DNA of 64,000 bases from positions 62,001-126,000 of the IMG/VR virus record IMGVR_UViG_3300050343_000191. One strand, written 5' to 3'. The notes beneath the pieces were generated by a model, which worked only from the letters and a program-made list of their open reading frames with translations, did no database searches and was not told the DNA's origin. Both the position numbers and the translations under genes were made by a program. Every line of letters starts with the position of its first letter. Positions within the stretch are counted from its first letter, which is position 1. Below, piece by piece: positions 3,278-60,552 of this stretch.

Positions 3278-4219
3278 TTACTTCTTCTTCTTTTTCTTCT
3301 TATGTGATCCGCAAGAAGATTCGATAATGCTTTGGATGAACTCTTCATCCAATTGATTCATTACATAATCTGCTTCTTTAATATCAGAAGCATGTCCTTC
3401 TTTAATCAGATAGTCTGCAATCACCTCGTAGTGAGCATAGATTGAAGGTACAGGATTTGCTCTAATATTCTTATATGCTTTAAGACTTACCTGATATCCA
3501 GGACTGTTCTTATAAAGATCCTTTGGTTGATTTTGCAATCTCCACCATCCAGCAGATTTGTTATTTGAAGATGAACTCTTTGCTTTTGCTGCTTTTGCTG
3601 CTTCTGCTGCTTTTGCATCTGCTGCTGCTTTTTCTGCTTCTCTTTGCTCTCTAGATCTTTTTTCTTCCGGCGTTTCCACCTTCTCTTCTGGATCTGATGT
3701 ATCTACCTTTGAATCAGTACTAGGATCTGATATGCCAGGAATTAACTTGTTATCTAAAGCGACTTTTGTACCAAGAGTAACAAGACCTGCAGCACCCGCA
3801 ACTGCAGCACCTTGTTTGATCTTTGTTTTTTGAGCAGATGGTATCTTATCTTTAAGTTTTCTAATCAGCGATGGTGGTTTAGTAGGATCAACTTTGGCAC
3901 CTGGTCTTGTTGCACCACTGGTAATAGGTCTTCCGCCTTTAGTTGTTGTGGGAGGTTTGCGGAGACGTACCTTTCCACCTCTACCAAAAAGTCTCATCAA
4001 GAATCCCGACATACCTCCTTTTTCACATATAAGTAAAAAGTCGGGATTACCTGTATCAATTGTCTCACTTAGAGTTATCGACTCGCAGATTTCTAATACT
4101 TTAGATTCATCATTTAAATTCCAAAATTCCATGATCTGATCTACATCATAACCTTCCTCAAGCATAGAGTAAGATATATGCAAAAATGTCTTTTGCTCTT
4201 CAGAAAGATTGTAATGCAT
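3278..4219 (-). CDS. Late hypothetical protein with two acidic EG[YH] domains and a poly-Lys tail
   Basis: 'MLEEGYDVDQI', 'YLIKEGHASDIKEADYVM', ends KKKKKKK; TAAATA at 4243-4248. Confidence 0.75.
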   Translation of the reverse strand: MHYNLSEEQKTFLHISYSMLEEGYDVDQIMEFWNLNDESKVLEICESITLSETIDTGNPDFLLICEKGGMSGFLMRLFGRGGKVRLRKPPTTTKGGRPITSGATRPGAKVDPTKPPSLIRKLKDKIPSAQKTKIKQGAAVAGAAGLVTLGTKVALDNKLIPGISDPSTDSKVDTSDPEEKVETPEEKRSREQREAEKAAADAKAAEAAKAAKAKSSSSNNKSAGWWRLQNQPKDLYKNSPGYQVSLKAYKNIRANPVPSIYAHYEVIADYLIKEGHASDIKEADYVMNQLDEEFIQSIIESSCGSHKKKKKKK

Positions 4220-4248
4220 CTCTAGTTACTATCCTATATTGTTATTTA

Positions 4249-6016
4249 TTAGTTGCCCGCTCTAGATCTCTGAGCGGCAACATTTGCTTTTCTGGTTGCC
4301 TCATCATTTCTATTGTAATATCCCTTCAAATAATCAGAGACATATGGAACTCCTGCACCAGCAGTTCTTCTTCCAATTCTCTCAAGAGGATTAGATGAAG
4401 TATATGCAAGTGAAGAAGGATCGTTACCATGCTTGTATACTGCTTTACCATCCTTAAAAGCACGATATCCAACTCGTTCTTTATTATTAGCATCACGAAC
4501 AATTGCCTTATTTCCACTTCGTGAAGTAGCAGACATAGCAGGAGTTCCAGTTTGTACCTGACGATTTGCTTTTGCCATCCACTTTTTATCAGAAGCACTT
4601 GCTCCCATTACATAACCAGAAGCAGCATCACCAAGAGTAGAACCAGCAAGTGGTCCAACAAACGCTGATGCTCTTTTTCCAATAACACCACGTAATAATG
4701 CAGTGGTGGCAATAGATCCTAATGTAGAACCTGTGCCAGAAGCAAGTGCTGCATTTGTTTGTCTTTCAGCAGTTTGTCCTCGTGCTTTTTCTCTTTCCGC
4801 TGCACCATATGCGTTAAAAGCACCATAGAAAGCACCCGAACCTGCACCACTACTTGCCTTTTTGACTGTTGGTGGTTTATATGTACTACTACCCTTCCTT
4901 ATACTAGTAGATCTTCTTCCTAAATCTGGAGGAGTGTTTGCTATTTTTTGTCTTGCTTGTTGTGGTGTTACCGGGTTTTTTTTAGTTGAGGGGGGTTTAG
5001 GACCACTATCAATTCTACTAGAAGGACCAGCAGCACCACTTACTCTTCTTCTTGTTGGATTTGCAGATACTGATACTGGTTTATTGCCTGGTTTGTATGA
5101 GAACGATCCGCTGCTAGTCTGACCAAATTTCAAAGTCTTACCGGCAGTACCCACAGTACTTGAAGTGGATGGTAATTTTGGTGGAGTTTTTGTCTTTGTA
5201 GTACCAGAAATTGTGAAAGATGGTTTTGGTGCCGGTAGGGATTGCTTCACTTTAGCAATAGTTTTAACTGGAATAGGTTTGATTTTTGGAAGTTTTGATC
5301 CAGAAGTCGCAGTAGAACTAGATGCTCCGGTACCCATATTTTTGAGAATTTCCTTTGCATTCAGATCACCAACCTTTACTTTACTATACTGCCTTGCACT
5401 TGGCGCTCTTCCACCAACACCCTGTGGTAGATTAGTCGTTGCAGGAAGTGATCTGTACGTTGGTGCCCCTGTAAGAGGATTTGCACCAGTAGGCGTACCA
5501 AAAGACTGTCTGAATCTTGCTGCCCTCTTAGATACCTCAGACTGTTTAACTGCGGTTGTTTTAGGTGTTGGTGCTGGTTTTGTTCTAGTCCCAATACCAG
5601 TAGATTTTACATCTGACGGTCTTGTCTGACGATATCTTTGACCTCTTCCAGGTTTTGCTGTTTCTCCACCAATCTTAATGTCATCAGCATCAGCACCTTT
5701 ACCACCACCAATAATATTAGAAGCTGCTTTTCTTGGCGTAGGATCTGCTCCTGCACGAGATCTAATATCATCAGCAACTTTTACCTGCTGTTTAATATCT
5801 GGTTTACCGGCATATCGTGCTGCGGAATCTTTGCTTGGATTAAATCCCTGACCACTATTTTTAGGTGATCCTTTCTTTGGGTTTACAGTAGTATTGGCAG
5901 GATCTTGCACCTTTGAACGGGAAGTCTCTATATCAACATTACCCCCCCCCCCCCCCCCCAACACTACTCTTAGTGCCAAAATTTGATTTTTTTCTTCCTT
6001 CGTTTAGTGATGCCAT
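4249..6016 (-). CDS. Large basic low-complexity protein interrupted at a G18 tract
   Basis: ATG at 6016 gives MASLNEGRKKSNFGTKSSV-G6-stop; one G fewer joins it to the 576-aa frame. Confidence 0.7.
5942..5959. repeat. C18 homopolymer (G18 on the coding strand)
   Basis: Read directly from the sequence. Confidence 0.95.
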
Positions 6017-6044
6017 TTCAGATACTTTGTAGTTTTTGCTTAAA

Positions 6045-6401
6045 TTATTTTCTAAGGATTTCAGGTTTTGCTTTTTTTTCTTTCTCTTTTCTTTCATCAT
6101 CACGTTTTTTTAATCTCATCTGATCAACGCCTATGGCACCAAGTTTAAAAGCAGCAGTGTATGGATTTGTCGCTGGCAGTGCTTGTGCAGCAGCATTATA
6201 CATACCAAATTCATCCCCATCTCTTACAGATTCAATTCCTCTCTTGAGACCTATCCCCGCTGATACTAAATTAGCTCCTTGTGTCCAGTAACCCGCTTTA
6301 GATCCACCCCTCAAAATATTAAATGCAGCACCCCAAGGATTTTCAACAATCAACTTCGATTGATCTGATTCAATAACAAATTGTTTATATGTTTTCATCA
6401 C
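6045..6401 (-). CDS. Late protein with a T4 internal-protein-like capsid-targeting leader
   Basis: N-terminus MKTYKQFVIE resembles the T4 IPIII leader MKTYQEFIAE; TATAAATA at 6418-6425. Confidence 0.7.
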   Translation of the reverse strand: MMKTYKQFVIESDQSKLIVENPWGAAFNILRGGSKAGYWTQGANLVSAGIGLKRGIESVRDGDEFGMYNAAAQALPATNPYTAAFKLGAIGVDQMRLKKRDDERKEKEKKAKPEILRK

Positions 6402-6426
6402 TCACACTGTTTTTAGATATTTATAA

Positions 6427-7458
6427 TCACTTTGCGCTTATAGATCCTCCACTTGTACCAATCTCTTTTCTATAATTGATAGTATTTTTTGTTGCTTGTT
6501 GACGCTCTTTTGCAAGTGCTGCAGCGTCTCTTTCTCTTTGTCCACCAACACCAGTTGCTCTAGAAAGTCTAGAGAAAAGATTTTGATTGCCTCTTTGTGC
6601 CATACTTGCTCTTGCAAGATAAACAGGTTTACCGTTTTTATAAGCAAGATCACCAACTCTACCACCAGAGAGAATTTTAGTGCTAGGAAGTTTTGCAGTT
6701 TTACCTCCACTAGTAATAGTATTATTTTTTTTATCTACATCCATTTTACCACCAGTACCGACGATGCCAACACCCTGTCTAGATCCGTAGGCACCTTGCT
6801 GACCTGCTTTTTGTCTTGCTTTGACTGCAGCAACGTCTTTAGGGGTTCCAACTTTCTTTTCACCAGCAACAGAACCCCATTCAACTGGCACTACTTCACC
6901 TTTATATTTTGCTGCTCCAATTCTAAAAGGTTTATCCTTTTCAGATCTGTCTGTCTTATTAGCGTAAATTTTTTCGGCCTTAGGATCATTATAAGTATAT
7001 CCCTTTTTATTTCTCCCTGTTGCTAAGTACTGATCTAATTTAGATTCTCCACCAGTAACATCAATTCTTTTACTAATAGTATAGTCCCCATATTGCCTTC
7101 TACCCCTCGGTGCTGCGGAACTGGATCCGGCACCACCTAGAGCAATAGAAGTGATTGGATTTGCATATAATGCGGCAGTATTTATTGCAGAGTCTTTTGC
7201 AGTTCTCGCATTTTGTTGAGTTTTTGGATCTTTTATTTTACTGATTCCTACTTCTGCTGCAGTATCTAAAGCAACATAAGTACCAAGTCTTGCTGCACCC
7301 CCACCCACTCTTTTCAAAAGAGATGGTCTTGTAGTAGTTGTTGCTGCTGATGGTGGTGGGGATGTTGGTAACTTGGGAGCAACTCTTGGTGGTTGTGCTT
7401 GAGGTTTCATCCTCATTGAATTAGATTGACGCATTGCATTCAATTGATTCCTTCTAGA
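6427..7458 (-). CDS. Basic low-complexity protein, paralogous to 4249-6016 at its C-terminus; 5' end joined in frame to nrdB
   Basis: Non-NrdB part of ORF 6427-7767; 'RVGDLAYKNGKPVY'. Confidence 0.65.
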   Translation of the reverse strand, partial: SRRNQLNAMRQSNSMRMKPQAQPPRVAPKLPTSPPPSAATTTTRPSLLKRVGGGAARLGTYVALDTAAEVGISKIKDPKTQQNARTAKDSAINTAALYANPITSIALGGAGSSSAAPRGRRQYGDYTISKRIDVTGGESKLDQYLATGRNKKGYTYNDPKAEKIYANKTDRSEKDKPFRIGAAKYKGEVVPVEWGSVAGEKKVGTPKDVAAVKARQKAGQQGAYGSRQGVGIVGTGGKMDVDKKNNTITSGGKTAKLPSTKILSGGRVGDLAYKNGKPVYLARASMAQRGNQNLFSRLSRATGVGGQRERDAAALAKERQQATKNTINYRKEIGTSGGSISAK

Positions 7459-8636
7459 GAATCCTGAGAAGGTATCTTTTTTGACATCTTGTTTGATTCC
7501 TCCGACGATGTAAGACTCAACCTCAGTTTCCTGAGGAGCGACCTGAAGACCCTTCGACGAAATCCAATGTTCCGTCCAGGGGAGTGGGTTATTCTTTGCG
7601 GGTATGTCATAGATTGGTTTAAGTCCAATTGCTTTCATTCTACGATTGGCAATCCATTCAACATACTGCTGAAGCAGTTTATCATTCAGACCAATCATAG
7701 ATCCATCTTTGAACAGATACTCTGCCCAAAGTTTTTCTTGATTAACACAATTTTCAAAATGCGCCAATCAACCATTGCTCTTCTTCTTTGAAGATTTTGC
7801 CATCTCAGGATCATCACCTTCTCTCCACTTCTTCAGAATATTCTGAGTAATGGCAAGATGCTGATTCTCATCTCTGGCAATCAGTGAGATGATTTTTGCA
7901 CTTCCTTCCATAAGTTTGAGTTCGCCAAAAGCAAAACTGCAAGCAAATGATACGTAAAAGCGAATACCTTCAAGAATATTAACGTTTGCAACTGCTCTGA
8001 AGAGTTTGCGCTTGAGTTCATATCTTGAAATTTGTGCATAAGGAACTCCTTCTAATGCGTGTTGCCAATCATTAGTACTATCATAATGATGTGCTGCATT
8101 AATAAAGTCATTATATGCCTGAGTAACACTCATAGCACGTTCAACAATGCGATCATCATTCAGAATGTGATCAAACACATCTGAAGGGTCTGGATAGATG
8201 TTCTTGATGATATGAGTATATGAACGACTATGGATCATCTCCATGAACCCCCAGACCTCCATACATGCTTCTAATTCAGGTAAGAGAGCAGTAAGGGATA
8301 AATGCCATACCAGGACCACGACCCTGAACCGAATCCAGCATGATCTGATACTTCAAGATTAGAAGTAAAGATATGCTTTTGCTCTGGACGTAATGTCTGA
8401 TAATCAGCACGATCTTTCTGGAGAGAAACTTCCTCTGGTCTCCAGAAATATCCCTAATTGTTGCGTTGTGAGTTTATCAAAAATTGGATACTTGTAAGAA
8501 TCATATCTCTGAATACCCAATGGTTTACCAAAAAACATTGGTTGTTTTTTAGTATCAACTACCTCTGAGTTAAAAACAGTCATGGATTCGACCATTGGTT
8601 TTCTTCTTTGTTTGTCTTAAATTTTACAAGACTCAC
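7459..8636 (-). CDS. nrdB: Ribonucleotide reductase class Ia beta subunit (frameshifted; lacks its own stop)
   Basis: EMIHSRSY, NILEGIRFY, RDENQH, VAPQETEVESY motifs across several frames. Confidence 0.95.
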
Positions 8637-10920
8637 AGTCTTCCTCCTCGGCGTTTTCTAATTGAGAAATTAAACTATCAAGAGACTCCTTAGTAGATTC
8701 TCTACTTCATCAGTCTTGATTATCGTATGTATTTTGATAATAAGAAGTCTTCCAACCGTATTTGTATGTAGTTAAAAGATCTTGTGCCATTACTGAAACT
8801 GGAACTTCAGAATCAGGATAGTTCTCTGGATTATAACTCCAATTGCCAGAAATTGCTTGGTCAAAGAACTTCTGCATTATAGCAACAATATTAATATACC
8901 CACGATTGGACCAGGCATATCCCAAAGTAACGTATAATTATTTTTAAGGTTGCATATTGCGGAACAATTTGCTTAAGAGGTCCTTTTTTGGCTTTTCTTA
9001 ATGGACAAGTATCCTCTAGGTGGTTCAATTCCATTTGTTGCGTTTGACACAACGGAACTGCTCTCCGAAGGCATCTGTGCGGACAATGTTGAGTTCCTAA
9101 CTCCGTATTCCAAGTACCCGTTGTCTAAGATCTCCCAATCATACTGAAGCTCATTTGCAACTATTTCATCTACATCATGTTTATATGTATCAATTGGAAG
9201 AATTCCATTACCATACTTGGTTCGATGACTATATTCACATGCACCTTTTTCTTTTGCAAGATTGACAGTTGCAGAAATTAAATAGTATTGGAATGCCTCA
9301 GTTAAATCATGAACTGCAGTTTCCCAGGCTCTGCATCATTGTAATTGAACCCATGCTTCGCAAGATAGTGTGCTAAACCGATATAACCGATTCCAAGTGA
9401 ACGACGTGCCTTTGTGGCAATTTCTGCTGCTCTGATGGGGTATCCTGAAAATCAATGAGTTCATCAAGACTCCTAACAGCAAGATCGCAAAGAACTTGAA
9501 GATCTTCAAGATCCCTAATTTTACCAATATTAATAGCACTAAGGATGCAGAGAGCAATTTCCCGTTTTCATCATCAATATGTTGTAAAGGTTTAGTAGGA
9601 AGAGTAATCTCTTGACACAATTGCTCATCTCAACTTTATCCATAAAGGATGAGTGAGAATTACAATGGTCAATGTTCATGATGTAAAGACGACCAGTCTC
9701 TGCTCGTTCTTTCAAGAAGGTCTAAGAAAGAGATCCTGTGCCCCGATAGTCTTTCTTGGAGTAAACTCATCTGATTCATAGCGTACATAGAGATCGTCAA
9801 ATGTATCAGTACCAAAAGCATCATAGAGACCTGGTACGTCATGCGGTGAGAAGAAGCTAATCTCTCCATTCGTAATGAAACGTTCGTAGAAAAGTTTTGA
9901 AATTTGGATTGAGTAGTCAAGTTTCGTACCCGATTGTCTTCTGTGCCTTTGTTGTTCTTAAGAACAATAATATCTTCTATTTCTTGGTGCCAGATAGGAA
10001 AGTGAACTGTAGCTGAACCACCTCTGATCCCGTTTTGAGTGCAACATCGTACAGTTGATTCAAACTTTTTAAGGAAGGGGACCACGCCTGTGTGTTGTAC
10101 CTCTCCGCCTCTGATTTTAGCGTTGATGCCACGGATTCGACCTGCGTTGATGCCGATTCCTGCACGTTGTGCAACATATTTACCAATAGCCATGTCACTG
10201 CTAAAGATACTATCGAGGGTGTCATCAACATCAACAAGAACACAGCTCGCATACTGTCGCAAGGGGTTCTGACCCCTGCCATGATTGGCGTGGGGATGTT
10301 GAGTTTGTGTCTGCTGATTGCATCATAGTATTTTTTTACGTAATCTAGACGGGTTTCTTTTGGATACTTTGAAAAAATAGTGGCAGCAATCAACAGATAC
10401 ATGAACTGCGGTGTCTCGTATTGAGCACCCGTACTACGATCCTGCACTAGGTATTTATCCACAACCTGACGCAAACCAGCATAGGTAAACAGATAGTCAC
10501 GATCATGATCAATAAATGATTCAAGTTTATCAAACTCTTCATCAGAGTATAAAGATCAAGAATTTCTGCATCATAGACTCCTTTCTCCACACAGAGTTTA
10601 GTGTGTTCCTACACTTTGGTGTCTCGTGTCTACGACCGTTGATTTGCTTACCTGAGAGCAAACAGAAGCAAGCGAGCGGCAACAAACTGATAGTTGGGAT
10701 GATCCAGATCGATCAAGTCGCTTGCAGAGCGAATCAAAATCTCCTGAATTTCTCCTGTAGTAATCCCATCATAAAATTGAATGCCAGATTGCATCTCAAC
10801 CTGAGAGGCAGAAACACCTGCCAGGTCCTTACATGCTTCCTCCACCATTACGTGGAGTTTATTCAGATCAAGAGGTTCAGTATTTCCATTTCTCTTAATT
10901 ACCTTTGTCCCGTTGCTCAT
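8617..10920 (-). CDS. nrdA: Ribonucleotide reductase class Ia alpha subunit (frameshifted)
   Basis: ATP cone VIKRNG, PTPIMAG, CTQNGIRGG, CQEITLPT, GWKTSYY, C-terminal CESC. Confidence 0.95.
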
Positions 10921-13633: not shown

Positions 13634-14866
13634 TTACTTTTTCTTTTTCTTTTTGTTACCGTAACCTTCTGCAGACATTTTTGCAGTTTGAGAAGTCATA
13701 ATCTTCATAACTTCTTCCCCATCTTCAGGTGCTCCAAGCATCATTGGGTTCTTGATGCCCATCGCTCTCAACTTATTCTTAAGAAGTTCTCTATAAGTTC
13801 TCTTTTCTCTATCCATATGTCCACATTCACAAGGACACTTCTTACACTTAGGACATTCTTCACCTTTTTCTTCAGCAACCTTTTCTTCAGCAACCTTTTC
13901 TACAGGATCGTTATTTGAGTCAATCTCACGATTTTTATATTCAGAAACCATACTCATAAAACGTTGTTGAGTTTTACTTACCGATTTCTCAGCAATCATT
14001 TCACCTTCAACTTCTCTATGAGCACGGAGATTCTTACTGCCAGCACCATCAACTTTAGAATCTGGATTGATCTGAACTACTGGATTTTTACCTGCATAGT
14101 TATTGACCTTACCATCAGGAACCATCGTTCCCTGACCTTCGGTTGAGGTAGTTCCATCAACAAGGAACTCTTCACTCATTCCCTTTTTCTTGGCAATCGC
14201 TGCATTGATTGCATCACGACGAGCATAGATGTACTTATCAGTACCGTCTTTCTTGCCATCATTATTCACATCACCATCTCTTTTTTGGGGATTCTTAGCG
14301 ACAGGATCCATCTTACCGCGATTCTTCTTTTCACCTTCGTAAGGTTCGCCGTGCTCAGTCATTTCAACTTTGAGACCCTTCGCTCTTAGTTCTGTGATCT
14401 TGGAACGATTAGCATATCTTACATAAGACTTGTCACTCTTAGGATCAGTGACTCTTACCTTATACTTTCTCTCTGCACCTTCATCTTCTTGAATTGGTTC
14501 TTTTTCAACCTTCTCGACAAATACTTTGAAGAGTGCGCTAGCAACAGTTCCAGTAGCACTATCAGACATTAAAGAATCATACGACTCTTTCTTATCTCCG
14601 CCACCATCTTTACCAAATAGTTTTGCTCTAACTGCCGTTTGTTCAGGAGCACTCAGATTACTATTCTGCATATACTGAGCATATGCTGCTCTCAGGTCAA
14701 CACCTTCTCTTCTTGCACGATAACGAATATCGTAGACTGCCTGACGGATTTTCTTTTCAGAACCTCCTTCACCACTCTCCGTTTTTGCGCCTTCTTTAGC
14801 GGCAGGAACTGCAGATGCAGCAGCGTGCTTACGTACTGGAAGGTCTTCAAATATATTTTTAGTCAT
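13634..14866 (-). CDS. Late modular hypothetical protein
   Basis: 'QAVYDIRYRARRE', DxNxDG loop, CPKC..CPCEC, poly-Lys tail; TATAAATA at 14904-14911. Confidence 0.75.
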   Translation of the reverse strand: MTKNIFEDLPVRKHAAASAVPAAKEGAKTESGEGGSEKKIRQAVYDIRYRARREGVDLRAAYAQYMQNSNLSAPEQTAVRAKLFGKDGGGDKKESYDSLMSDSATGTVASALFKVFVEKVEKEPIQEDEGAERKYKVRVTDPKSDKSYVRYANRSKITELRAKGLKVEMTEHGEPYEGEKKNRGKMDPVAKNPQKRDGDVNNDGKKDGTDKYIYARRDAINAAIAKKKGMSEEFLVDGTTSTEGQGTMVPDGKVNNYAGKNPVVQINPDSKVDGAGSKNLRAHREVEGEMIAEKSVSKTQQRFMSMVSEYKNREIDSNNDPVEKVAEEKVAEEKGEECPKCKKCPCECGHMDREKRTYRELLKNKLRAMGIKNPMMLGAPEDGEEVMKIMTSQTAKMSAEGYGNKKKKKK

Positions 14867-14874: not shown

Positions 14875-16155
14875 TTACGATTTACGTTTTCCTATCTTAT
14901 ATTTATTTATAAACGCTATTCCGCTAGACATAGCGCCTGGAACCATCGATGAAACATAGTTAAAGTGTGAGTCAGTTCCAACCAAACGTTGATCTGCAGG
15001 AACTCCGCCAATCTCAGTTCCATTGACAATTGCTTCATTCACATCTCTAATCCAAGACTTAAACATAATATCATCTTCTGTAACACAAATAAGATGATTT
15101 GCACCTCTACGGACAATTTTTCCAACCAACCCAGTATTCATATTTTCAACCCACTCACCAATTCGATATATTGTTTTGCTTACATAATTTTCACGAAGAG
15201 TTTGTTGATCAAACTTAGGTGCCATTTCCCAAATACCCCACTCCTCATTAATACCCATTGACATACGAAGAGTGTTATACAAATCCTTTACTTCCTTAGG
15301 TGCCATACCATCAGGCATTGCCATTTTAAAAGTTCTATAATCATTTTCAGACGCGGCAAGTCTCAATCTTGACGCCGAAAGACCTTCAACTCCTTGAGCA
15401 TCTGGATCTCTATCACCAGCAGAAACAACCTCAATATTGCTAAACTGATAGAGAGTGCCATTATAATTGTTGGCCAATTTACTAAATTCACCTACTCTGT
15501 CAGCACCACCAACAATTCTGACATTCTCATATCCATCACCATGTGCTTTCTTTAAAACATCAAAAATAGTTCTAGTATTGTTATCATTTTGAATTCTACC
15601 GGCGTGCTTGGGGAACATCCCTCTCATAAATGCAACTTTGGTATCAGCGTCGAGAGGATTCTTCTTAGGATCATTTGAACGAGATGGAACTATAATATAG
15701 TCTCCATGTTCTTGATCTGCCGATTTCTTAGCAGTATCCATCAATTGCTGATGCCCAATATGTGGGGGATTGAATCTGCCAAAAGCAATAGTAAGAGTTC
15801 CTTTTGATTTTACTGCTTTTTGTGGACCTGCAGTAAGATCTGGATTGAGTTCTACTGCTGGTTGTGCTGGAGCAGGTGCTGCTTCTTGTTCTGGTGCAAC
15901 TTGTTGGGGTTCTTGTTTTAGACCTGGATCTGTAAAGTTTGGATCGGAGACATTCTTTTCCAATTCAGTTTGATCGGGATCACCCTTACCAATCTTCTGT
16001 CTCTTGTTATAAAATTTTAATTTACCCTTTTCAGTTTTCGCTACAAATTCCTTAGTGGTCCTATCATACCAAGAACCATGACCGTCACCCTCCAGACCAA
16101 GACGTTGTGCTTGCTGTGTTGCAGATTCGCTTAGAAATTGAAAAAAGGATTTCAT
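14875..16155 (-). CDS. Cytidyltransferase-like (HIGH) nucleotidyltransferase
   Basis: FGRFNPPHIGH, GADR, SAS..R motifs. Confidence 0.85.
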   Translation of the reverse strand: MKSFFQFLSESATQQAQRLGLEGDGHGSWYDRTTKEFVAKTEKGKLKFYNKRQKIGKGDPDQTELEKNVSDPNFTDPGLKQEPQQVAPEQEAAPAPAQPAVELNPDLTAGPQKAVKSKGTLTIAFGRFNPPHIGHQQLMDTAKKSADQEHGDYIIVPSRSNDPKKNPLDADTKVAFMRGMFPKHAGRIQNDNNTRTIFDVLKKAHGDGYENVRIVGGADRVGEFSKLANNYNGTLYQFSNIEVVSAGDRDPDAQGVEGLSASRLRLAASENDYRTFKMAMPDGMAPKEVKDLYNTLRMSMGINEEWGIWEMAPKFDQQTLRENYVSKTIYRIGEWVENMNTGLVGKIVRRGANHLICVTEDDIMFKSWIRDVNEAIVNGTEIGGVPADQRLVGTDSHFNYVSSMVPGAMSSGIAFINKYKIGKRKS

Positions 16156-16367
16156 TGATATCGGTTTTTGCGTAGTTCTAAAGTAACATTGCCACGATTG
16201 GTAACTATGTACTTTAAAATGTCATTTCGTATCTTTATATATTTATCCTTATTTTTACCCCCATTAGAATCAATCTCACGCTGAAAAGTCATGTAGATAT
16301 ATCTGGTGAAGTGTTCGTAATTATCACCATCATAGTCTTTAATTAATTCTTTAACGTATGAATTCAT
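16152..16367 (-). CDS. Small hypothetical protein
   Basis: 71-aa ORF with ATGA overlaps on both sides. Confidence 0.6.
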   Translation of the reverse strand: MNSYVKELIKDYDGDNYEHFTRYIYMTFQREIDSNGGKNKDKYIKIRNDILKYIVTNRGNVTLELRKNRYQ

Positions 16368-36330: not shown

Positions 36331-37787
36331 TTATTCAGGAAGTCCCTTTACTCCTGCTCTCTTATCAGCATAATATCTCTTTAATGCTTCTTTAGATCCT
36401 GGATTATTTGGATTGTACCAAGAAGGTCTCCCCATCTCCATATTTCTCTGTCTGACTTGAGTAGATGCTTCACGAGCATTGCGATCACTAACAGCACGAG
36501 GATCTAAATTATTCAATCTAGTTTTTTCTCTCGTAGCAGCGCGAGTTGCATCCTTTGCCTTCGATGCTGCAGTGCTCTGATTAAGTCTATTGACAGCATC
36601 TGTTGCTTGACCTTGGCGAAGTCTCAATGCCCCAATATCACCAGCTGGCATTTGCGTTGGTGCCTTGTTAATTAACTTTTTAATAAAAGGAATTTTGCTT
36701 GCATACTTAGTAGCTTGCTTTCTAATAAAACCCACCAATTCATTCAATTGTTCTTCATTCAAATTTGCCATCATATACATTGTATCCTCTTCACTATATC
36801 CTTCTTCAATAAATTCACCTTTGACAATATCAAAAAGGTCTACACTTGAAAGCTTAAGGGATTGCGTAATTTTTTTAGTTGCAGCAGGAGTTCTCGTTTG
36901 AGTTACACTAATACTAGTGTCTGGATTAACTTTCGTTTTTACAGTATCACCTGTTGAAACTGTACCAGACTTAACTGTATTGTTTACAGAAGACTGTGTA
37001 TTTGCAGGAATCTTTGCAGGAATCCCACTCTTAACAGCAGCAACTTCTTTTTGAATCTTATTTTTTTGAGCAAGTCGATCTTGTTGAGCACGAAGAGCAC
37101 TACCGGTAGGTGCCTGCTTATTCAAAACAGATGGTCTGTTAGCAGATTTAATAGAAGCATTAACTGATGCCTGTCTTTGACCCTGCTGCACAGCCAGCTT
37201 TAATCTGCACCTTCAGCGCCCTTACCTGCCGCTCTTGCTGCTTGTGCCGCTCTCAATTCTGCAGACGTAGGTGCTCTCCTCTCAAACTTTGTTCCACCAG
37301 GAGTGGTTCCAATTGCTGGTTTATTAGTTGCCTTAAATGCCTTATCACCGAATGCCTTTGCATCACCGCCAGATTTTCTTAATCTATCATATTCCTTATT
37401 AATTTCTGCTTTGGATGAATATGTCTTACCACCAATTGTATATGTTTGGGTTGATTTTGGGGTAGATGGTGAAGGTTTTGATTGAACACGCTGGTCATCA
37501 GTTCTTGCGGCGTTATCACGCTTAATCTGCGCTTCAACCTCATTTCTACGATCAGAACCCTTAGGAGAAATACCGACTGATCCTACAGGAACAGTATTGG
37601 CAGCAGCCTTTCTCTGTTGCAGTCTTTTTGCAATGACACCTTCTGGATTTCCAGATTTTTGAACAAGTTTACTAAATTCCTCATCACTCATTGATGTGTA
37701 ATCAGGAACTTTTATTTGTTCTTCAATATAAACTTTAGCGTAAGCCTCTTTGAGAGACTTCGCTCCTTTACCAGTTAGTCTCTCCAT
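36331..37787 (-). CDS. Basic protein with an internal acidic EEGY domain (two ORFs joined across frameshift(s) near 37200)
   Basis: 'SLKEAYAKVY', 'DLFDIVKGEFIEEGYSEEDTMYMMANL'. Confidence 0.7.
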
Positions 37788-37790: not shown

Positions 37791-37949
37791 TCAACCTTCT
37801 TGAATTTGTTCAAACCACTGTTCACTCATTCCACTAATAATGGAATCTGCAGAATCTACGTCTGTGGCGTAACCTTCCTCAATGAGGTGTGTTACAACCT
37901 TTTCATAGATCTCTTTAGTCTCTTTTAATTTCTTAGGGGAAGGTTTCAT
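37791..37949 (-). CDS. 52-aa stand-alone EEGY-domain protein (below the ORF-track cutoff)
   Basis: MKPSPKKLKETKEIYEKVVTHLIEEGYATDVDSADSIISGMSEQWFEQIQEG; TAAATA at 37974-37979. Confidence 0.75.
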   Translation of the reverse strand: MKPSPKKLKETKEIYEKVVTHLIEEGYATDVDSADSIISGMSEQWFEQIQEG

Positions 37950-40117: not shown

Positions 40118-40138
40118 TGCTTGGTTGCGTATGGATCT

Positions 40139-40194: not shown

Positions 40195-40833
40195 CTATTT
40201 GGATTGTTTGCCTTCAACAATACTCTCTTTCCACCCTTCACTCATATTTGCCATAATGGCGACCGCAGCCTCCTCAGTTTCAGCAAAACCTTCATCAATT
40301 AAATGACCTTTGATGATATCAAAGAGGTCTGTATCTTCATTGTTTACAGTTCCAGCAGCGACACCCTTTTCCTGTTTTGTTTGAGGTCTGCGCTTACCCA
40401 TTCTTGCTGCTTCTGCTTCAGGGGATTGGTCAGCAGGTCCAAGAACTTTTTTACCTACATCGACCGCAGCTTGACCAATTTTTTTAACAGCACCCATCAT
40501 ACCACCCATTTCACTGATGGTATCACCTTCGTGCTCAACGTGCTCTGGATGCTCAACCATAGTAATAACTTCCATATCTTCTACGGATACGTTCTCTACA
40601 ATACCGTGCTCAAACTGAACATCGTAGTGTGAAACGAAACCGTTCTCATCAGGAACAGCGTGCTGACCGAAGATGGTTTCACCTTCACCCCACTGCTCAG
40701 AGCAGACTTTCTTGGCACAATTGTGATCGCCCTTTTCAGACTTACTTACACAATCACCCTTTTTCTTCTTTCCATATCCCTCATAAACGGAAGCATATGC
40801 CTCCATAAGAGATCTTACTTCTTTTGCTTCCAT
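40195..40833 (-). CDS. Late modular protein with an EAY leader, a His/Cys domain and a C-terminal EG[FY] domain
   Basis: 'SLMEAYASVY', 'HNCAKKV..HYDVQFEHG', 'DLFDIIKGHLIDEGFAETEEAA'; TAAATA at 40862-40867. Confidence 0.75.
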   Translation of the reverse strand: MEAKEVRSLMEAYASVYEGYGKKKKGDCVSKSEKGDHNCAKKVCSEQWGEGETIFGQHAVPDENGFVSHYDVQFEHGIVENVSVEDMEVITMVEHPEHVEHEGDTISEMGGMMGAVKKIGQAAVDVGKKVLGPADQSPEAEAARMGKRRPQTKQEKGVAAGTVNNEDTDLFDIIKGHLIDEGFAETEEAAVAIMANMSEGWKESIVEGKQSK

Positions 40834-40848: not shown

Positions 40849-41542
40849 TTATTCTCCTTTATATTTAGTATTGTATTTCTTTCCGCGCCAAGAAAATTCT
40901 GCTTTACCTTTCTTTCTAGCATCCGCAAATGCTGCATCAAAATTCTTAGCAGACTTTCTTCTTCTTTCTGCATTTGCCTTTGCTTCTTCCTGCTTCTTCG
41001 CATTTGCTTCAGCAGATCGCTCACCAGTTCCTTGAGACTTTGGTGGAGATTCGGGGCGACTGGTAGAAGGCGTTTGAGAAGCAGGCATACGTACTTCAGT
41101 TTTCTTAGAACCTTGACTACTACTAAGTGCTAATCCAGTAGCACCAGCAACTCCGACTGGTAGAGCAGATTTTTTCACAGCACCAATAACTTTATCAAGT
41201 TTAGATACGGTAGGTGATACTGGAGGTTGAGGAAGGGAAGGTGCAACTCTCTCAGGTTGTGCTTTTAAGGTCGGCATACTTCTCTGAGATGCCTTACCAC
41301 CAGACATTGTAAGACCAGTATTACCACTTCCAGACAATCCAGTGTTGGGATTTCTGGTTACATTTCTCAACTCCTGTGCTCTAGCAGAAGTTCCAGGAAT
41401 CTGCATCTGTCCTGGAGATGCTTGTGCAGGCTGCTACTTTCGGTGTTGGTAAAGCAGAGCTTGCAGCAGGAACTGGACTGGTGCCAGTAAATGGTGTTCT
41501 TCCACCAGTAAAGTTTTGCGCCTTACCAGTTTTTGTAAGAAG
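40849..41542 (-). CDS. Basic low-complexity protein; 5' end joined to gp46
   Basis: C-terminus 'FDAAFADARKKGKAEFSWRGKKYNT'; upstream reading LLTKTGKAQNFTGG follows gp46 DKVKGF. Confidence 0.65.
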
Positions 41543-43242
41543 AAATCCTTTGACTTTATCAAACTTATGACACTTTCAAATTTGTCATGCAATCTGTTTA
41601 TGAGAGATGACAAAAATATTAGCATCCTTTAATCACATAACGAATAATTTTTAGAAACTCTTCGGTTCCAAATCCATCTAGTGAAGAGTCAAATACTTCA
41701 TCCATAATCAGCAGGTTGGTGTTTACAGAATTTTTGACACGCGCAACTTCTCTCCAAGTGAAGAGTAGAGGCAAATCAATTCTCATCTTTTCACCTTCAC
41801 TAAAAGAACTATAAGAAAATCTTCGTGAATAGGTGACTTCAATGGTTTCACTTAAATTCCTCATCAAGATTGAAGTTAATGTAGAAATCCATCATCTGAA
41901 GATAACGATTAACCTGCTGATTAATGAATGGAAGATACTTTCTTGATGATCTTTGTTTTTACTCCATCATCTTTGAGTAAGTGAATATGCAAAATCGTAA
42001 TGAACGATTTCTTGTTTTTTGTCTGAAAGATATTCAATTGTATTTTGGAGATTACTTTAAACTCGCTCTAATTTCTCATGTTCAGTATTTCTGGTTTGCA
42101 AGGTTACTCGGTAATAGTTTGAATTTCATGTTCAAGATCTCTGATTTGTCGTTGATTTGAGGGAAATCCGAGTATTGTTTTGAGAAATGCCATGCGTTAG
42201 TTTTGTAATCTCCTTAGATAGGGAATTGAATTGACGTTCTCTTTCTTGTTCAAACTTAATGGTTGATTCCAACTCTTGATAACCTTCCTTAAGTTCCTTT
42301 GCTTTATTTTGAACGTCCTCAATTTTATTTAACCGAAACTCTTCTTCTATGTCTTGAGTACAAGTAGGGCAGACCGTATTTTCTGTAAAAAACTTATGCT
42401 CTTTGGTAATGGTCGCAACTTTTGAGAGATTTTACCTTTAAGATTGTTTAGTTTTGATAATTTTTCACGTTGCACCAGTAACATCTTCTTGCTCTTTAGT
42501 GAACTTTATATATCTTCTTCTAGACAGCATTATCTTTCATATAAACTTCAACTTCACTCATCAACTTAGTAATTTTATCATTATTAGATTTTATATTCGC
42601 ATTGCCACGACTTTCAAGTTCATTAATAAAGTTCTTGCTGCATCTTCATCTTATCTTTAAGATTATCTTTCTTCAATATCAAAGATTTGATTTGTTCTTT
42701 CTGAGTACGAATTTATCTTTGAGAATATTATTCATCGCAGAGAAGATACGAATATCCAACAAGTCTTCAATTACTTCACGACGATTAGTAGTAGTAGTTG
42801 CATAAAAGGCACAAAGGTGCTACTACCCAGAATTACAATCTGTGTAAATGATTTATAATTTACTTTAAGAATACTCTCTTCAAGAATGCGTTGATTGGCA
42901 CGATCATCTGCTTCCTTATGAAGTGGATTACCATTCACCTCAATATCAAAGACATTTGGTTTGATTCCACGACGAACCAAATAGTCACGACTATTCACAG
43001 AGAACTCAATCTCAACTAAACAATCACTCTCATTTGTAGCATTCGCATTAGTTGTGGTTTATTAATCTTACGAAATGGTTTATTGAACAATACAAAAGTA
43101 AGTGCATCCAACATTGTGGATTTACCTGCACCATTTGTTCCAATAATCAAGATTAGTATGATGTTTTGAAAATCAATCTCAGTAAATTGATTGCCAGTGA
43201 ACTTAAAAAGTTTTTATATCTAATCTTTTGGAAGGTTATCAT
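41543..43242 (-). CDS. gp46: Recombination endonuclease ATPase subunit (frameshifted)
   Basis: GTNGAGKST, CPTC hook, FSEGEKMRIDL, IMDEVFDSSLD. Confidence 0.92.
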
Positions 43243-48381: not shown

Positions 48382-49751
48382 TCACATGAGGTTTTGAACC
48401 TTGACTCTTCTGTAGTAACGGTTGGCGTTCTTGAGTAAGAGCCAAGACCAGCGCCAACGTTGCACCTTCTAGCGAAGGGGTTAGCGACCATGCCGTAGCG
48501 AGTCTTGAATCCGATTTTGGGCTGGAAGGTGTTCTCTCCAACTGCACGAACCATCTGAAGAGGAACGTATGGGCAGTAGAACAGACCTGCGTCATAAGGT
48601 GAAGAACCCTTATAACCAGCAACGTAGTACTGATAGCAGCAGCACGTTAGCAGAATAAGGATCGATGTAGACCGATACTTACCTTGCAAGAACACCAGCG
48701 AAGGTGTTACCGGTGTCATCAACGTTCAGGTTGCGTTGAGTGCAGGGGTGTAATCAAGTACACCAGCCATGGTCAGTGCGGAAGCAACGTCTGCAGAACA
48801 CAGAATCATGTTGCCCTTTCCTCTACGAGTCTTTGTGCGATTGCGTTAGCATCTCGCTCGATTTGGAAAATAAGACCTTTGAACTTCTCAACAGACCAAC
48901 GACCGTTGGAGTCAACGTCAAGGTCAAAAGTACCAGCGGTTAGCAACATTAGTTGAGCACCAGTTCAGCAACTTGTAGATGGTTCTGATGACTTCACGGT
49001 TGATTTCAGCAAGGATCTCAGTGGAGAGAATGTTGGCAAGTTCTGCTCAGCATTCAGACCATGAATTGCCTTGAGGTCTTGTGCCAGTTCTAAGTGAATA
49101 CTCTGCTTTCAGAGCTCTGGACTTAGCAGTAACGGTGACTTTCTCGATCGAGAATGCCATCTCGTTGAATGTCATTACCGTGCCATCTCCAAGTGCTTCA
49201 GCGTCGTCGTGGTACGCATACCCTGACCTACGTTGTAAGCTTGGGCTTGGGTTAACTCAGAGACCAGGATTGGTTACCAGCTGTGCAGTAGTACCTAAAC
49301 CAACGTTGCAGCAGTTGTCCTGCCGGGTGAGATTGCCAGACCACCAGCATTCTGACCAGAGAATGCAGTATCTGCTTCGTCGAACAATGCTTCAGTTCCA
49401 CCTGATTGGTATAGCGGGAACGCATTGCGAAGATCAGTCCAGTAGGACCGTTCATTGGTTGAACGCCTGCGAGGTCATATGCGACCAAGTTAGGCATTGC
49501 GCGTCTGATCAGGAGATCAGAACGGGGTCGAAACCTGTTAGGGGCAAGAGCTCCAGATCCAGGTTACCAACAGAGTTGGTAGGAGCTTCAGAAAGGAATT
49601 CTCTTTCCTCTCTGAGCATGTTTTTCTTGGTTCTCCAGGAGAACTGCGGTAACCATTCTCTACGGTGGGAATCCTTGATGCCTCCGAGACCCTCGTAGTT
49701 GAGGATGGTGCCCACTTCTCCTGCAGGTGTTCAGCATTGAAACATTTGCAT
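48382..49751 (-). CDS. gp23: Major capsid protein (frameshifted)
   Basis: GVQPMNGPTGLIFAMRSRY, FYCPYVPL, FQPKIGFKTRYG. Confidence 0.97.
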
Positions 49752-50956: not shown

Positions 50957-51603
50957 TTAAAGATTTGATAAGAAATTATTGAATAATCTCAACTTATGCT
51001 CTTCAAGTTTTTTGATCAACGAGAGTATTAATTCTCTTCTGAGTTCTTTCTGCAAGTTGTTCACGAAGGATTCCTCCTTCCCAAACCCACTCTTTTCCTT
51101 CCATAATTCCTGAACAAAAGCATCAGGAGCAGAAGGATCGGCAACGATATCAGCAGCAGTTGCTAACATGAAATCTTCACCAACAACTTTACATACCTTC
51201 ATTGGTCTTCTTTTAATGAACCAACACCACGAGAAGAAACTCCAAGCATCACACCTTCATCGAGAAGTGAAGATGCAATTTTACCCATAGGAGTAAAGAA
51301 TTTGTGCCTTTACCTTTAAAATTATTACCTTCTCTGAGTGAGTGAAGTAATCTTATGAGAAACACGGTCAAGATTGACGGTAGGACCATCAGGATGACCA
51401 AGTTCTCCAAGAGCACGACCCTTATTAACGAAAGATTCGTTATATCGATCTACTTCTTTAGAAAGAGTAGTAATGGGATACATTCTTCCATTACGATTTT
51501 TGAGTTCACCTTGAAGGAATACACCTTCAATGTAAAGTTTTATTAGACCCTTACCTTCGGTAATAATCTGTACGTTTGAAATTTCTTCTGTGATAAGTTT
51601 CAT
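50957..51603 (-). CDS. gp21: Prohead protease (frameshifted)
   Basis: NRNGRMY, GELGHP, GVSSRG, DIVADPSAPDA. Confidence 0.93.
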
Positions 51604-54417: not shown

Positions 54418-54438
54418 TTGAGTTAACCTCTACTTGAA

Positions 54439-58602: not shown

Positions 58603-58617
58603 AATAAAACTCCTAAA

Positions 58618-60552
58618 TCAACATCTCCAGCGTTTACGTGCCTTACAGATTTTTTTGTCTGGGGTCTTTGAACAATCAATATTATGCATCTTCATCTGAC
58701 CTTTAGAACGACTGCAATAGTTCTTACGGCGATTGGCATCTTTACTTCCCTTTTTAACTTTACCAGTTACTGCAGTCTGTAACTTTGAACCTGGATTTTC
58801 GCGCTTATAAGCATTTACAGATTTCTGACTCATACCATCAACACCGTCTTTACGGTTTGATTTTTGCCAGTCTTCCTTTACCTCTTGCTTACCATAAGTT
58901 TTGCAGGGATCTTTTCCACAACCACAGTTCTTTTTCTTTTTTTCTTGCAGATCCATATCTGATTTCCAATCAGAGAAATGTGCTTTTACACAATTTGGAT
59001 ATCTCTTTCCAAACATTGTCTTCATACCCTTTTTCTTATATCCTTTCCAACACTTTTCATCAAGATTAGCAGCAACTTTAGCAACTTTTTTAGATTGCTT
59101 TGCGTGCATCTTAGAAGCACCTGCTAACTGCTTTGAGATCTCTTTCAGTTTATCTTGTTTAGAGTTTGCTTCATCAAGCATATCACTTCCAAGACCTTGA
59201 GATTGCTGAAGTGGTTCGTTAGAAATCAAATCTATAGATTCTACTTCAGTTGCATGGAAATCATCTCTCCAGTTGGAGAACTCATAACTTTCATTTTTGG
59301 TCTTATTGCCCCAATTCTTAGCACCAACTTTGCGGCACTTAACTAGAGCACCTGATGCATATGCACTTGGCCAGACAGAATAACGTGACTTGACTTTATG
59401 GTAACAAGCATCTTTGGTGCCACTACCTTTTCCTTTTCTATCCTTCCCTTCTTCTACAATTTCACCTTCTGGTTCATATGAGTTTCTAAGTCTCTGCATT
59501 TTTGGATCCAAAGTTCCTGGTTTTGCGCCAGCAGCATTTTCAATTGCTCTTTGTCTAGCACCAGCACCAAACGGTTTTCCGTTAATAGTAGCATTTTGTC
59601 TGGCATTATCTAATGCTTCATCACCCTTTCTCTTAAGATATTTTCCTGCTTTATAAAGACCATATGCTCCTGCAGCAATACCAAGACCTCCAAGAACACC
59701 TTCGTCTAGTTCAGTTTTCCAGTTTGAGTAAGATTCTTTCATTTTTTTCTTTGGTTTGTCAGTAGAAACATAGGTTGGTTTAGCTGCTCCAGACTTTTGT
59801 TGTTGTCCGGGATCTTGTCTTGACTTTCTTGTGTCAGCCGATCGAAGTTCTTTCTTCGACATACTGGCTTTCTTGGCCGAGGAGTAACATTTAGGTGTTC
59901 CCTTCTCACCAGGTTCATTAGCACAAGGGGAACCATCAGATTGAACCCAACCGGGTTTTCCGTCTTTTGATTTAGATTTACCAAACCAATCACGGAGACC
60001 TTCCTCACTTACAGTCTGCTCATTCATTTTATCTGCGTAACCAGCAGCAGCATCAGTGTCGTGTGCGGTATCAGTAATCTTTGCTTGCATCCAGGCAGGA
60101 ATATCCTTTTCCTTTTTACCTAATGCCTTTCTCAACTTTCTGATGTTTTCTGCTGACTTTTTGAGTTGACTCTGTGCCATTGCAACTTCATGATCACCAT
60201 TTTTTCCTTCACTTACCTTTTCTCTACCCCTACAATGGGATTTCTGAGAGAATCCTTTTGGATTATCGCAATCGATGGATTTTTTATATTTCGCACTCCA
60301 TGCTTCAGAGACGCCACCTCCGCCGCCTTCACCACCTCCATCAGAAGAGGAGCCATTCCCGTTGCCATTGCCATTTGAGTAATTTCCATTCCCATTACCA
60401 TTCTTTTTTTTACCTTCAGTTTCCTTTTCGTCCTGATGCTCATTATCCCGCATCAAATATCCACTGGACATTACATGATAACCTTTAGGAATTTTCTTGC
60501 ATTTTTTGGAGGTATTACAGTAGTAATAACCCTTTTTACAGGACTTTGCCAT
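58618..60552 (-). CDS. Modular 644-aa late protein between gp16 and gp17
   Basis: Many short Cys/Lys-rich modules separated by x-x-E sites; TAAATA at 60575-60580. Confidence 0.8.
   Translation of the reverse strand: MAKSCKKGYYYCNTSKKCKKIPKGYHVMSSGYLMRDNEHQDEKETEGKKKNGNGNGNYSNGNGNGNGSSSDGGGEGGGGGVSEAWSAKYKKSIDCDNPKGFSQKSHCRGREKVSEGKNGDHEVAMAQSQLKKSAENIRKLRKALGKKEKDIPAWMQAKITDTAHDTDAAAGYADKMNEQTVSEEGLRDWFGKSKSKDGKPGWVQSDGSPCANEPGEKGTPKCYSSAKKASMSKKELRSADTRKSRQDPGQQQKSGAAKPTYVSTDKPKKKMKESYSNWKTELDEGVLGGLGIAAGAYGLYKAGKYLKRKGDEALDNARQNATINGKPFGAGARQRAIENAAGAKPGTLDPKMQRLRNSYEPEGEIVEEGKDRKGKGSGTKDACYHKVKSRYSVWPSAYASGALVKCRKVGAKNWGNKTKNESYEFSNWRDDFHATEVESIDLISNEPLQQSQGLGSDMLDEANSKQDKLKEISKQLAGASKMHAKQSKKVAKVAANLDEKCWKGYKKKGMKTMFGKRYPNCVKAHFSDWKSDMDLQEKKKKNCGCGKDPCKTYGKQEVKEDWQKSNRKDGVDGMSQKSVNAYKRENPGSKLQTAVTGKVKKGSKDANRRKNYCSRSKGQMKMHNIDCSKTPDKKICKARKRWRC

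Follow-up and report, generated by a model that had tools for sequence, protein, structure and literature searches.

The variable islands of a 64,000-nucleotide stretch of the virus record IMGVR_UViG_3300050343_000191 (hereafter the window; window position x corresponds to record position x + 62000) encode a set of late accessory proteins for which a common fate has previously been proposed. Nine open reading frames (ORFs), designated here as 3278, 4249, 6045, 6427, 13634, 36331-37787, 37791, 40195 and 58618, featured in a preliminary description as one family of cationic proteins, loaded into the phage head by means of short N-terminal leaders, matured by the prohead protease gp21 and delivered to the host, on a scale much larger than in phage T4. 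The present analysis favours, with reasonable rather than high confidence, late accessory proteins of at least three kinds: class A proteins, which would be head cargo led by a T4-type capsid-targeting sequence (CTS); class B/C proteins, which carry an N-terminal motif B and a module C and are probably virion-associated; and basic proteins without a leader. The window is collinear with Synechococcus phage S-SKS1 (HQ633071, about 56-118 kb), and its source is a T4-type cyanomyovirus close to this phage.

Class A proteins are recognised by an N-terminal decapeptide. The strict pattern M-[KR]-[TS]-aromatic-x-x-aromatic-hydrophobic-x-E has two matches in the six-frame translation of the window, both at ORF starts (6398 and 16155). 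The first belongs to a gene at 6045..6398 on the minus strand, which encodes a 117-residue protein (isoelectric point, pI, 9.7) with the leader MKTYKQFVIE at 6369-6398 and TATAAATA at 6418-6425. Across the homologs of this protein, down to 37 % identity, M1, K2, Y4, F7 and E10 are invariant. An ESM Atlas search with it gave no informative result, and its AlphaFold2 model, all-helical and of low confidence (predicted local distance difference test, pLDDT, 55), was not used. The second match opens a gene at 14875..16155 on the minus strand, absent from the earlier list, whose 426-residue product is an NMNAT/cytidylyltransferase-like enzyme (Pfam CTP_transf_like) with the leader MKSFFQFLSE at 16126-16155. 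This gene is probably co-transcribed from CATAAATA ahead of 16364-17041, and its product is 45 % identical to the NMNAT of phage S-SCSM1, which starts with MKSFLQFLKE and is labelled a virion protein. The body of a further, very basic cargo gene (net charge +38) lies at 6427..7458 on the minus strand, continuing the reading frame of nrdB (7459-7767); owing to a deletion the window lacks the promoter and the first ~37 codons of this cargo gene, and no leader survives there. In contigs L126-L128 this gene has its own TAAATA and starts with MKRFNEFMNMIKE or with MKTFNEFLNxISE, a 13-residue form of the leader which resembles the MKTFKEF start of T4 IPI. The canonical leader is found on two window genes, or three when the intact relatives are counted, while no T4-type leader is present on 3278, 4249, 13634, 36331-37787, 37791, 40195 or 58618.

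The T4 genes ipII and ipIII, as read from NC_000866, begin with MKTYQEFIAE, exactly as quoted in the preliminary description, and ipI begins with MKTFKEF. Residues 4 and 7 of the T4 CTS govern targeting and residues 8 and 10 processing, and cleavage between Glu and Ala is known for gp21 (PMC9026906). The leaders of 6045, 14875-16155 and the intact 6427 gene match the T4 CTS at these functional residues, with aromatic residues at positions 4 and 7, a hydrophobic residue at position 8 and Glu at position 10. Judged by these residues, the decapeptide MK[TS][YF]xQF[LIV]xE is the cyanophage version of the IPII/IPIII CTS. A full-text literature search, covering journals available without subscription, returned no paper linking a CTS to cyanophages, and internal proteins are unmentioned in a 2010 review of the T4-like cyanophages.

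A degenerate DNA pattern of the leader was scanned over IMG/VR and matched at least 120 loci; the counts given below are among the matches listed. The leader peptide motif is fitted by 118 of 125 matches, nearly all of which are at or close to ORF starts, and T4 core genes are present in 96 of 120 loci. At least forty-eight cargo clusters without mutual similarity stand behind the class A decapeptide. Within 866 kb of loci not chosen by the DNA scan, the motif occurs fourteen times with Met as first residue, always at an ORF start, and in three further cases its other nine residues are preceded by a residue other than Met. Ser at position 3 is encoded by both AGY and TCN codons, and Arg, Cys and Trp are virtually absent from the leaders even where the search pattern permitted them; selection therefore appears to act on the peptide and not on the DNA. 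At position 11, on which the search placed no constraint, Ala or Ser is present in 69 % of the sequences and in 23/48 clusters, as fits a Glu|Ala-type gp21 site, and the residues from position 12 onward are variable. The mature parts carry a net positive charge in 38/48 clusters, compared to 27 % of background proteins. Furthermore, the same cargo occurs with and without the leader. This is the case for DUF6267 proteins (leader in locus L042; none in S-SZBM1, P-HM2 and Syn9), for NMNAT (leader in the window, S-SCSM1, Syn9 with MKKFSAFLSE and S-SZBM1 with MRFRQFIIE) and for the Cys-rich N-terminal module of 58618, which stands behind leader A in L040. Pfam comparison of twenty leader-A cargo proteins yielded only DUF6267, DUF5661 and DUF6576, along with sub-threshold matches. 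By these sequence measures, the decapeptide is widespread and modular in marine T4-like phages.

A tandem array of class A leaders occurs in a distant T4-like contig (L121, IMGVR_UViG_3300047491-type), in which four consecutive genes at 6505-9422 start with MKTFKQFI[TSL]E and continue with unrelated sequence. The array recalls the internal-protein locus of the T-even phages, and the contig is only ~30-39 % identical to cyanophage gp18-gp20.

The protease expected to act on such leaders is encoded in the window. The gp21 gene, located by tblastn with S-SKS1 gp21, lies at 50960..51603 on the minus strand and is split over two frames by indels; the S-SKS1 protein belongs to Pfam Peptidase_S77 (PF03420; E = 1e-34). 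A predicted propeptide cleavage site, REFLSE|APT, is found at 49578..49604 on the minus strand, within the frameshifted gp23 gene (48385-49751). Its REFLSE|AP aligns exactly with SFLTE|AE of T4 gp23, with the Glu corresponding to T4 residue 65, which bears out the earlier remark that gp23 here carries the same type of site (FLSE|A). Because of this alignment, the T4 gp21 cleavage specificity has probably been kept in this lineage.

Enzymes of the NMNAT/cytidylyltransferase type have been recovered from the particles of related phages. The cytidylyltransferase of S-SZBM1 (locus 140), whose N-terminus reads MRFRQFIIE, was detected by virion mass spectrometry (PMC9146016), as was the NMNAT of S-SCSM1 with its MKSFLQFLKE start (PMC9602691). 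A cytidylyltransferase was likewise detected in the virions of S-CREM2, in a study that comments on 'the frequent detection' of enzymes of this type in cyanophage particles (PMC10665884); leader status was read for the S-SCSM1 and S-SZBM1 enzymes, and S-CREM2 counts for enzyme detection only. A targeting leader is mentioned in none of PMC9146016, PMC9602691 and PMC10665884. The T4-type leader on this enzyme would supply a mechanism, and hence an explanation, for its presence in cyanophage virions. In the first 104 kb of S-SCSM1, two of three tag-bearing proteins are virion proteins, which is suggestive in a sample that is too small.

Several further features of the NMNAT gene and its surroundings were observed. 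The NMNAT-like proteins share a conserved block of ~50 residues directly after the leader (QQAxRLGLxGDGHGGWYD..., residues 11-60), and the same block is found in a separate 144-residue leader-A protein in L046. The GenBank record of S-SKS1 (L001 18013-19235; L002 3257-4597) leaves its NMNAT homolog (MKSFFQFLFE), a 709-residue peptidase and other genes unannotated. The NMNAT reading frame of S-SKS1 is also split, and this record probably contains frameshift errors or pseudogenes. A single tRNA-Ala(TGC) gene is situated at 17083-17155, between the late-promoter genes 16364-17041 and 17337-17999, and S-SCSM1 has a tRNA-Ala gene in the same neighbourhood, just ahead of the NMNAT gene and flanked by two genes with the label virion protein.

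By analogy with T4, we infer a route for class A proteins that comprises targeting, cleavage, residence in the head and ejection. The decapeptide would dock the protein onto the prohead core, gp21 (Peptidase_S77) would cut after the leader Glu, and the mature protein, mostly basic, or the NMNAT-like enzyme, would remain in the DNA-filled head, from where it would probably enter the host together with the DNA. The class A genes are, on this analogy, of the T4 CTS-led internal-protein kind by mechanism and not by homology of their mature proteins; as similarity is confined to the leader, they are not members of the IPI-III families. The earlier proposal of head cargo is supported for 6045, the NMNAT gene (14875-16155) and the intact 6427 gene, on the basis of a T4-matching leader, the presence of gp21, the retained gp23 site and the NMNAT in the virions of relatives, and does not extend to all nine ORFs.

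The second kind of protein, class B/C, is defined by motif B with its Glu at residue 11 or 14 and at least one copy of module C, and both 36331-37787 and 40195 fall within it. The gene at 36331..37787 on the minus strand encodes 480 residues when intact (net charge +34; pI 10.0), with the N-terminus MERLTGKGAKSLKE|AYAKVY, module C at 36727-36843 and a frameshift near 37206. Its division into two genes (36331-37191 and 37200-37787) was rejected, with one intact 480-residue gene present in the 99 % identical contig L131 (2376-3818). A tblastn search with this intact gene against cultured phages found nothing. The gene at 40195..40833 on the minus strand encodes an acidic protein of 212 residues (pI 4.9), preceded by CTAAATAT at -34, which starts with a helix (MEAKEVRSLME|AYASVY) and continues through a small Cys/His beta domain and a disordered linker to module C (40210-40335); E11 and A12 are invariant in its family. 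Its AlphaFold2 model has a helix at residues 3-18, a disordered linker and a three-helix module at residues 170-210 with a pLDDT of ~88, and is confident only for module C. No PDB entry matched this model below E = 0.05 in a Foldseek comparison, and weak Tudor/SH3-like matches to the small beta domain were disregarded. Between these two class B/C islands, window 37981-40147 holds a conserved 709-residue 'peptidase' gene (three ORFs in the window; intact in L131), which has no Pfam match.

Module C consists of 40 residues, with a consensus of about xDxFDxIxxHLIxEGYAxxxExAxxIMxNMSExWxxSIxE ('EEGY' three-helix module). Two copies occur in 3278, one each in 37791, 36331-37787 and 40195, and one at the start of the intact 40849 gene. 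The 3' two-thirds of the latter, a basic gene of 315 residues, lie at 40849..41554 on the minus strand; its promoter and first ~82 codons are missing in the window, and the intact form starts with module C (MDNFYEEVYQYLIDEGI). The gene at 37791..37949 on the minus strand, preceded by AATAAATA at -30, is the first of an operon with 36331-37787 and encodes an acidic protein of 52 residues, little more than a single module C (37794-37919); in many contigs this gene is likewise kept behind that of the peptidase. The 313-residue product of 3278..4219 on the minus strand, likewise with AATAAATA (at -29), carries one module C at each end (4079-4198 and 3317-3439), is basic and rich in Pro, Lys and Ala in between, and finishes with Lys7 at the C-terminus. 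Its N-terminus, M[HY]YNL[ST]E, is kept among relatives. The start of 3278 (MHYNLSE) had been listed among the leaders. Both this start and that of 37791 (MKPSPKKLKE) lie at or just before module C, a predicted folded module, and more likely belong to a folded domain or adjoin one than form an obvious detachable leader.

Out of 1.84 billion representatives, a profile of module C matched 3,594 clusters at E <= 0.001, whose proteins often have two or three copies, and the module is covered by no Pfam family. Motif B opens 85 of the best 150 representatives among the 3,594 clusters, and leader A opens none of them. When aligned on the Glu, motif B reads L-x-E-A-Y-x-x-V-Y, with the Glu at residue 11 in 61/85 and at residue 14 in 17/85. 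The SLKE|AY and SLME|AY starts remarked upon earlier are indeed shared by 36331-37787 and 40195, although they represent a different N-terminal block and not the T4 decapeptide. To judge from these profiles, module C and motif B make up a large undescribed domain family. In S-SCSM1, gp089 starts with MDSKTFNSLSEAYAAVY behind a TAAATAAATAAATA promoter and is labelled a virion protein, and the class B/C proteins are probably virion-associated. Since the fixed-distance L-x-E-A is identical to the gp23 site, gp21 processing of class B proteins is suggested, and the chances that this L-x-E-A is a gp21 processing site appear about evenly balanced. As conservation extends to both sides of the Glu, the block could instead be a functional helix of the mature protein and not a propeptide.

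The remaining three ORFs encode leaderless basic proteins. The gene at 58618..60552 on the minus strand, between terS and terL and with CTAAATAA at -28, encodes a Cys-rich, very basic multi-module protein of 644 residues (net charge +57) with DUF6321 at its C-terminus and no leader. Its full-length counterpart in S-SCSM1, gp029, has the same N-terminus, modules and position next to terL and is labelled a virion protein; because the counterpart of a leaderless protein is in virions, leaders would not be required for virion association. Modules of 58618 are found behind leader A in L040, L041, L067, L068 and L089. The DUF6321 module also occurs in Pelagibacter podophages (HTVC027P and Skadi-5) and in Microcystis phage MaMV-DC, and elsewhere (L040, L060, L067 and L102) as a stand-alone protein of ~95 residues behind leader A. 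The gene at 13634..14866 on the minus strand lies directly after the NMNAT gene, with TATAAATAAATA upstream, and encodes a 410-residue basic protein (phrog_3326; pI 9.2) with a Lys6 C-terminus and a conserved N-terminus (MxxxIFE[ED]xPxRxH). Its homologs adjoin a cytidylyltransferase in P-SSM2, P-SSM5 and S-SRM01, and it is weakly similar to S-SCSM1 gp280 and gp279, both of which are labelled virion proteins. The third gene, at 4249..6016 on the minus strand, encodes a very basic, low-complexity protein of ~583 residues (net charge +66 to +69; pI 10.9) that starts with MASLNEG; it has no promoter of its own, follows 6045 and is frameshifted near 5940-5960. An in-window start was corrected for this gene, the real MASLNEG start being at 6016, with an indel in a poly-Gly run breaking the frame. 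Members of this family are polycations of 580-770 residues, and the MASL[NS]EG start is kept in L126-L128. Oligo-Lys tails were observed on two of the window proteins, with seven Lys ending 3278 (3278-3300) and six ending 13634 (13634-13655), and similar tails occur on relatives in L136, L146 and L062. These could be DNA-binding or could result from slippage-prone A-runs.

When the nine ORFs are considered as a set, their existence is confirmed, in that all lie on the minus strand and recur in the independent contigs L126-L135, while three of the gene models (36331-37787, 4249 and 6427) were in error by comparison with cleaner relatives. All nine are located in islands without a DNA match to S-SKS1. 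The motif TAAATA occurs 15-45 nucleotides upstream of six (3278, 6045, 13634, 37791, 40195 and 58618), so that the placement of most of the set behind this late promoter holds for these and not for the other three; NATAAATA is a published cyanophage late promoter (PMC2984593). TAAATA is also found upstream of 16364, 36022, gp18 and gp20, and upstream of none of the eleven replication genes checked. The basic character ascribed to the set extends to seven of its products, with pI values of 9.0-10.9 and net charges reaching +66, and not to the acidic 37791 and 40195. A hydrophobic-x-Glu within the first 16 residues is present in 8/9 ORFs, compared to 30 % of 244 background cyanophage proteins. 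Because of this background rate the loose motif is weak on its own and was rejected as evidence for a leader, and the T4-like decapeptide is confined within the set to 6045. All-against-all comparison recovered no common homology, with module C, in four ORFs, as the only shared element; the N-termini fall into three or more unrelated types (A; B with module C; none), and a single homologous family was accordingly rejected. Nor is a cargo set much larger than that of T4 supported, as canonical leaders number two to three per ~65-100 kb examined, which is a T4-like number. Comparison of the nine ORFs against Pfam and PHROGs yielded only families of unknown function, plus DUF6321 on 58618, and no internal-protein family of either database was matched.

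The T4-type core genes of the window are nearly all on the minus strand. In descending coordinates these are gp13, gp14, gp15-like, terS, terL, gp18, gp19, gp20, gp21, gp22, gp23 and UvsW, followed by gp55, gp47, gp46, gp45, gp44, gp43, UvsX, gp41, gp61, nrdA and nrdB. At window 1-3277, four plus-strand genes converge on 3278, and this strand switch marks the edge of the long minus-strand block; one of the four has a virion-structural C-terminal match (phrog_29022) and one is tail-fibre-assembly-like (phrog_3304). In comparison with S-SKS1 and near-identical contigs, dense single-base indels split gp23, gp20, gp21, gp43, nrdA, nrdB and other genes. The variable islands are 92-99 % identical to the cleaner contigs L126, L131 and L132, with few indels, while the core segments are 82-90 % identical and indel-rich. 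Two deletions of ~320-350 bp, at window 7459 and 41543-41554 relative to near-identical contigs, fall exactly at core/island borders (nrdB and gp46), and in both cases the first gene of the island has lost its promoter and N-terminus. The 'ORF 6427-7767' was therefore rejected as one gene, as it consists of the last 103 codons of nrdB (7459-7767), fused by the 350-bp deletion at 7459 to the body of a separate 380-residue gene. The window assembly resembles a chimeric consensus of co-occurring strains. The in-frame stops are, on this sequence comparison, assembly errors, because the ORFs are intact in near-identical (99 %) contigs and the differences are scattered single-base indels; stop-codon reassignment and programmed frameshifting were rejected as their cause on the same grounds.

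Several observations weigh against the three kinds of protein proposed above. The commonest leader-A family (~104 residues; SxNIxGDFNG) is not among the reported virion proteins of S-SCSM1 (gp030) or S-SZBM1 (191 and 192), and the authors of the proteomes caution that abundant late proteins could co-purify with particles (PMC10665884, PMC9602691). The published cyanophage proteomes come without peptide-level N-termini. The cytidylyltransferase of P-HM2 has no leader, conservation in class B runs six residues past the Glu, 37791 (pI 4.6) and 40195 (pI 4.9) are acidic, and the window itself is error-ridden, with two cargo N-termini missing from it. The absence of the 104-residue family from two virion proteomes would also suit a class A decapeptide that is conserved for another reason, as a translation-initiation or mRNA element, a recombination linker in cassette shuffling, a degradation signal or a tail/baseplate tag; the leader is found at the edges of hypervariable islands, which are sites of shuffling. 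Such a role is nevertheless unlikely when set against the conservation at peptide level, with free synonymous and Ser-family codon change, the near-identity, functional positions included, to a T4 signal established by experiment, the small residue after the Glu, as at gp21 sites, the confinement of the pattern to contigs with T4 core genes and the repeated occurrence of NMNAT cargo in particles. The indels throughout the core genes and the two border deletions raise the further question of whether the ORFs or leaders are products of poor assembly, through frameshifts, chimeric joins or recoded stops. An origin of this kind is exceedingly improbable and already largely refuted, as contigs from other samples (L126-L135 and P0001-P0007) and cultured phages have intact versions of these genes that begin with the same N-termini, and the in-frame stops are accounted for by indels relative to 99 % identical contigs and not by recoding.

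A stronger competitor, plausible though short of probable, is that the class B/C proteins, together with the basic proteins that have no leader (4249, 13634 and 58618), are late proteins other than protease-matured head cargo, such as external or tail parts of the virion, DNA-condensing or assembly factors, or abundant contaminants in preparations of particles, with the L-x-E being a functional helix or due to chance. Motif B is kept on both sides of the Glu and predicted to form one helix, module C is an acidic folded domain unlike the T4 internal proteins, 58618 lacks a leader and yet has a counterpart in virions, and proteomic support extends to one class B protein only. On the other hand, an ordinary helix would hardly account for a nearly invariant L-x-E-A whose Glu lies at a set distance from Met1 (residue 11 or 14) in most of the 85 diverse representatives; the motif equals the L-S-E|A of gp23 in the same lineage, and the genes have late promoters and share islands with class A genes. 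The full claim of the preliminary description, with all nine ORFs forming one family of leader-bearing, gp21-matured, cationic and host-delivered head cargo on a scale far above that of T4, draws on the near-N-terminal hydrophobic-x-Glu in 8/9, an own TAAATA in 6/9, the basic nature of 7/9, the N-termini MASL[NS]EG, MxxxIFE[ED] and M[HY]YNL[ST]E kept among relatives, and the virion proteins of S-SCSM1 that correspond to 13634 and 58618. It is distinctly improbable, given that homology is limited to module C in four ORFs, that there are three N-terminal types, with none on 58618, and that the loose motif, for which the ORFs had been picked, is shared by 30 % of background proteins. Furthermore, the MHYNLSE and MKPSPKKLKE starts stand directly at a predicted folded module, two ORFs are acidic, one is a deletion fusion, and the canonical leaders are about as numerous as in T4. 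A more far-reaching proposal, which extends the three-kind reading and is advanced as a speculation, is that the marine T4-like phages may run two parallel N-terminal head-address systems, the T4-type decapeptide and a tag not recognised before, M-x(8-11)-L-x-E|A-Y-x-x-V-Y, with a new three-helix docking module, which together would package dozens of cargo families, including a nicotinamide adenine dinucleotide (NAD)-salvage enzyme and long polycations.

Class A proteins may be compared with several known systems of packaged proteins. In common with T4 IPI-III, they have a 10-residue N-terminal tag (MKTYQEFIAE in T4; MKTYKQFVIE and MKSFFQFLSE in the window), which ends in hydrophobic-x-Glu followed by Ala or Ser, is portable over unrelated, mostly basic cargo and is encoded in hypervariable loci alongside a protease of the same family (gp21, Peptidase_S77). 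The longer cyanophage variant parallels T4 IPI (MKTFNEF versus MKTFKEF). Unlike IPI-III, the cyanophage cargo lacks sequence homology beyond the leader and includes a 400-residue NMNAT-like enzyme, DUF6267, DUF5661 and low-complexity polycations of 500-770 residues, and its genes, which have late-type promoters, are dispersed between replication genes; packaging and cleavage are predictions in the cyanophages, and one common leader family is unseen in two virion proteomes. T4 Alt, a head-carried and injected ADP-ribosyltransferase, provides a conceptual parallel to NMNAT as an enzyme in the particle, gp21-matured and presumed to act at the start of infection, but is of another enzyme class, without homology, and has propeptides at both ends, whereas NMNAT has an IPIII-type decapeptide. 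The ejection proteins of SPN3US/phiKZ-like phages similarly comprise many internal head proteins with N-terminal propeptides, which a related prohead protease removes by cutting behind the Glu of a short motif. They differ in lineage and propeptides, with no shared decapeptide known there, and the cyanophage set is smaller. A possible functional analogy exists with the Dar system of phage P1 (DarA/Hdf/DarB), in which co-packaged and injected head-internal proteins counter host defences, although the proteins and their incorporation hierarchy are unrelated and involve neither a CTS-type decapeptide nor a Peptidase_S77.

Several cyanophage papers report NMNAT/cytidylyltransferase in purified virions without a known route of entry. 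If the class A route described above is correct, NMNAT would be delivered at the very moment of infection, where it might, for example, sustain NAD when host defences deplete it. The ten-residue tag would serve as a predictor of head cargo for abundant ocean phages from sequence alone, and points to many uncharacterised, fast-evolving cargo families as candidates for host takeover or anti-defence; it may also provide a handle for packaging foreign proteins into cyanophage heads. Should both address systems prove real, the virion would be a general protein-delivery vehicle, the cargo of which could be read from genomes across thousands of ocean viruses.

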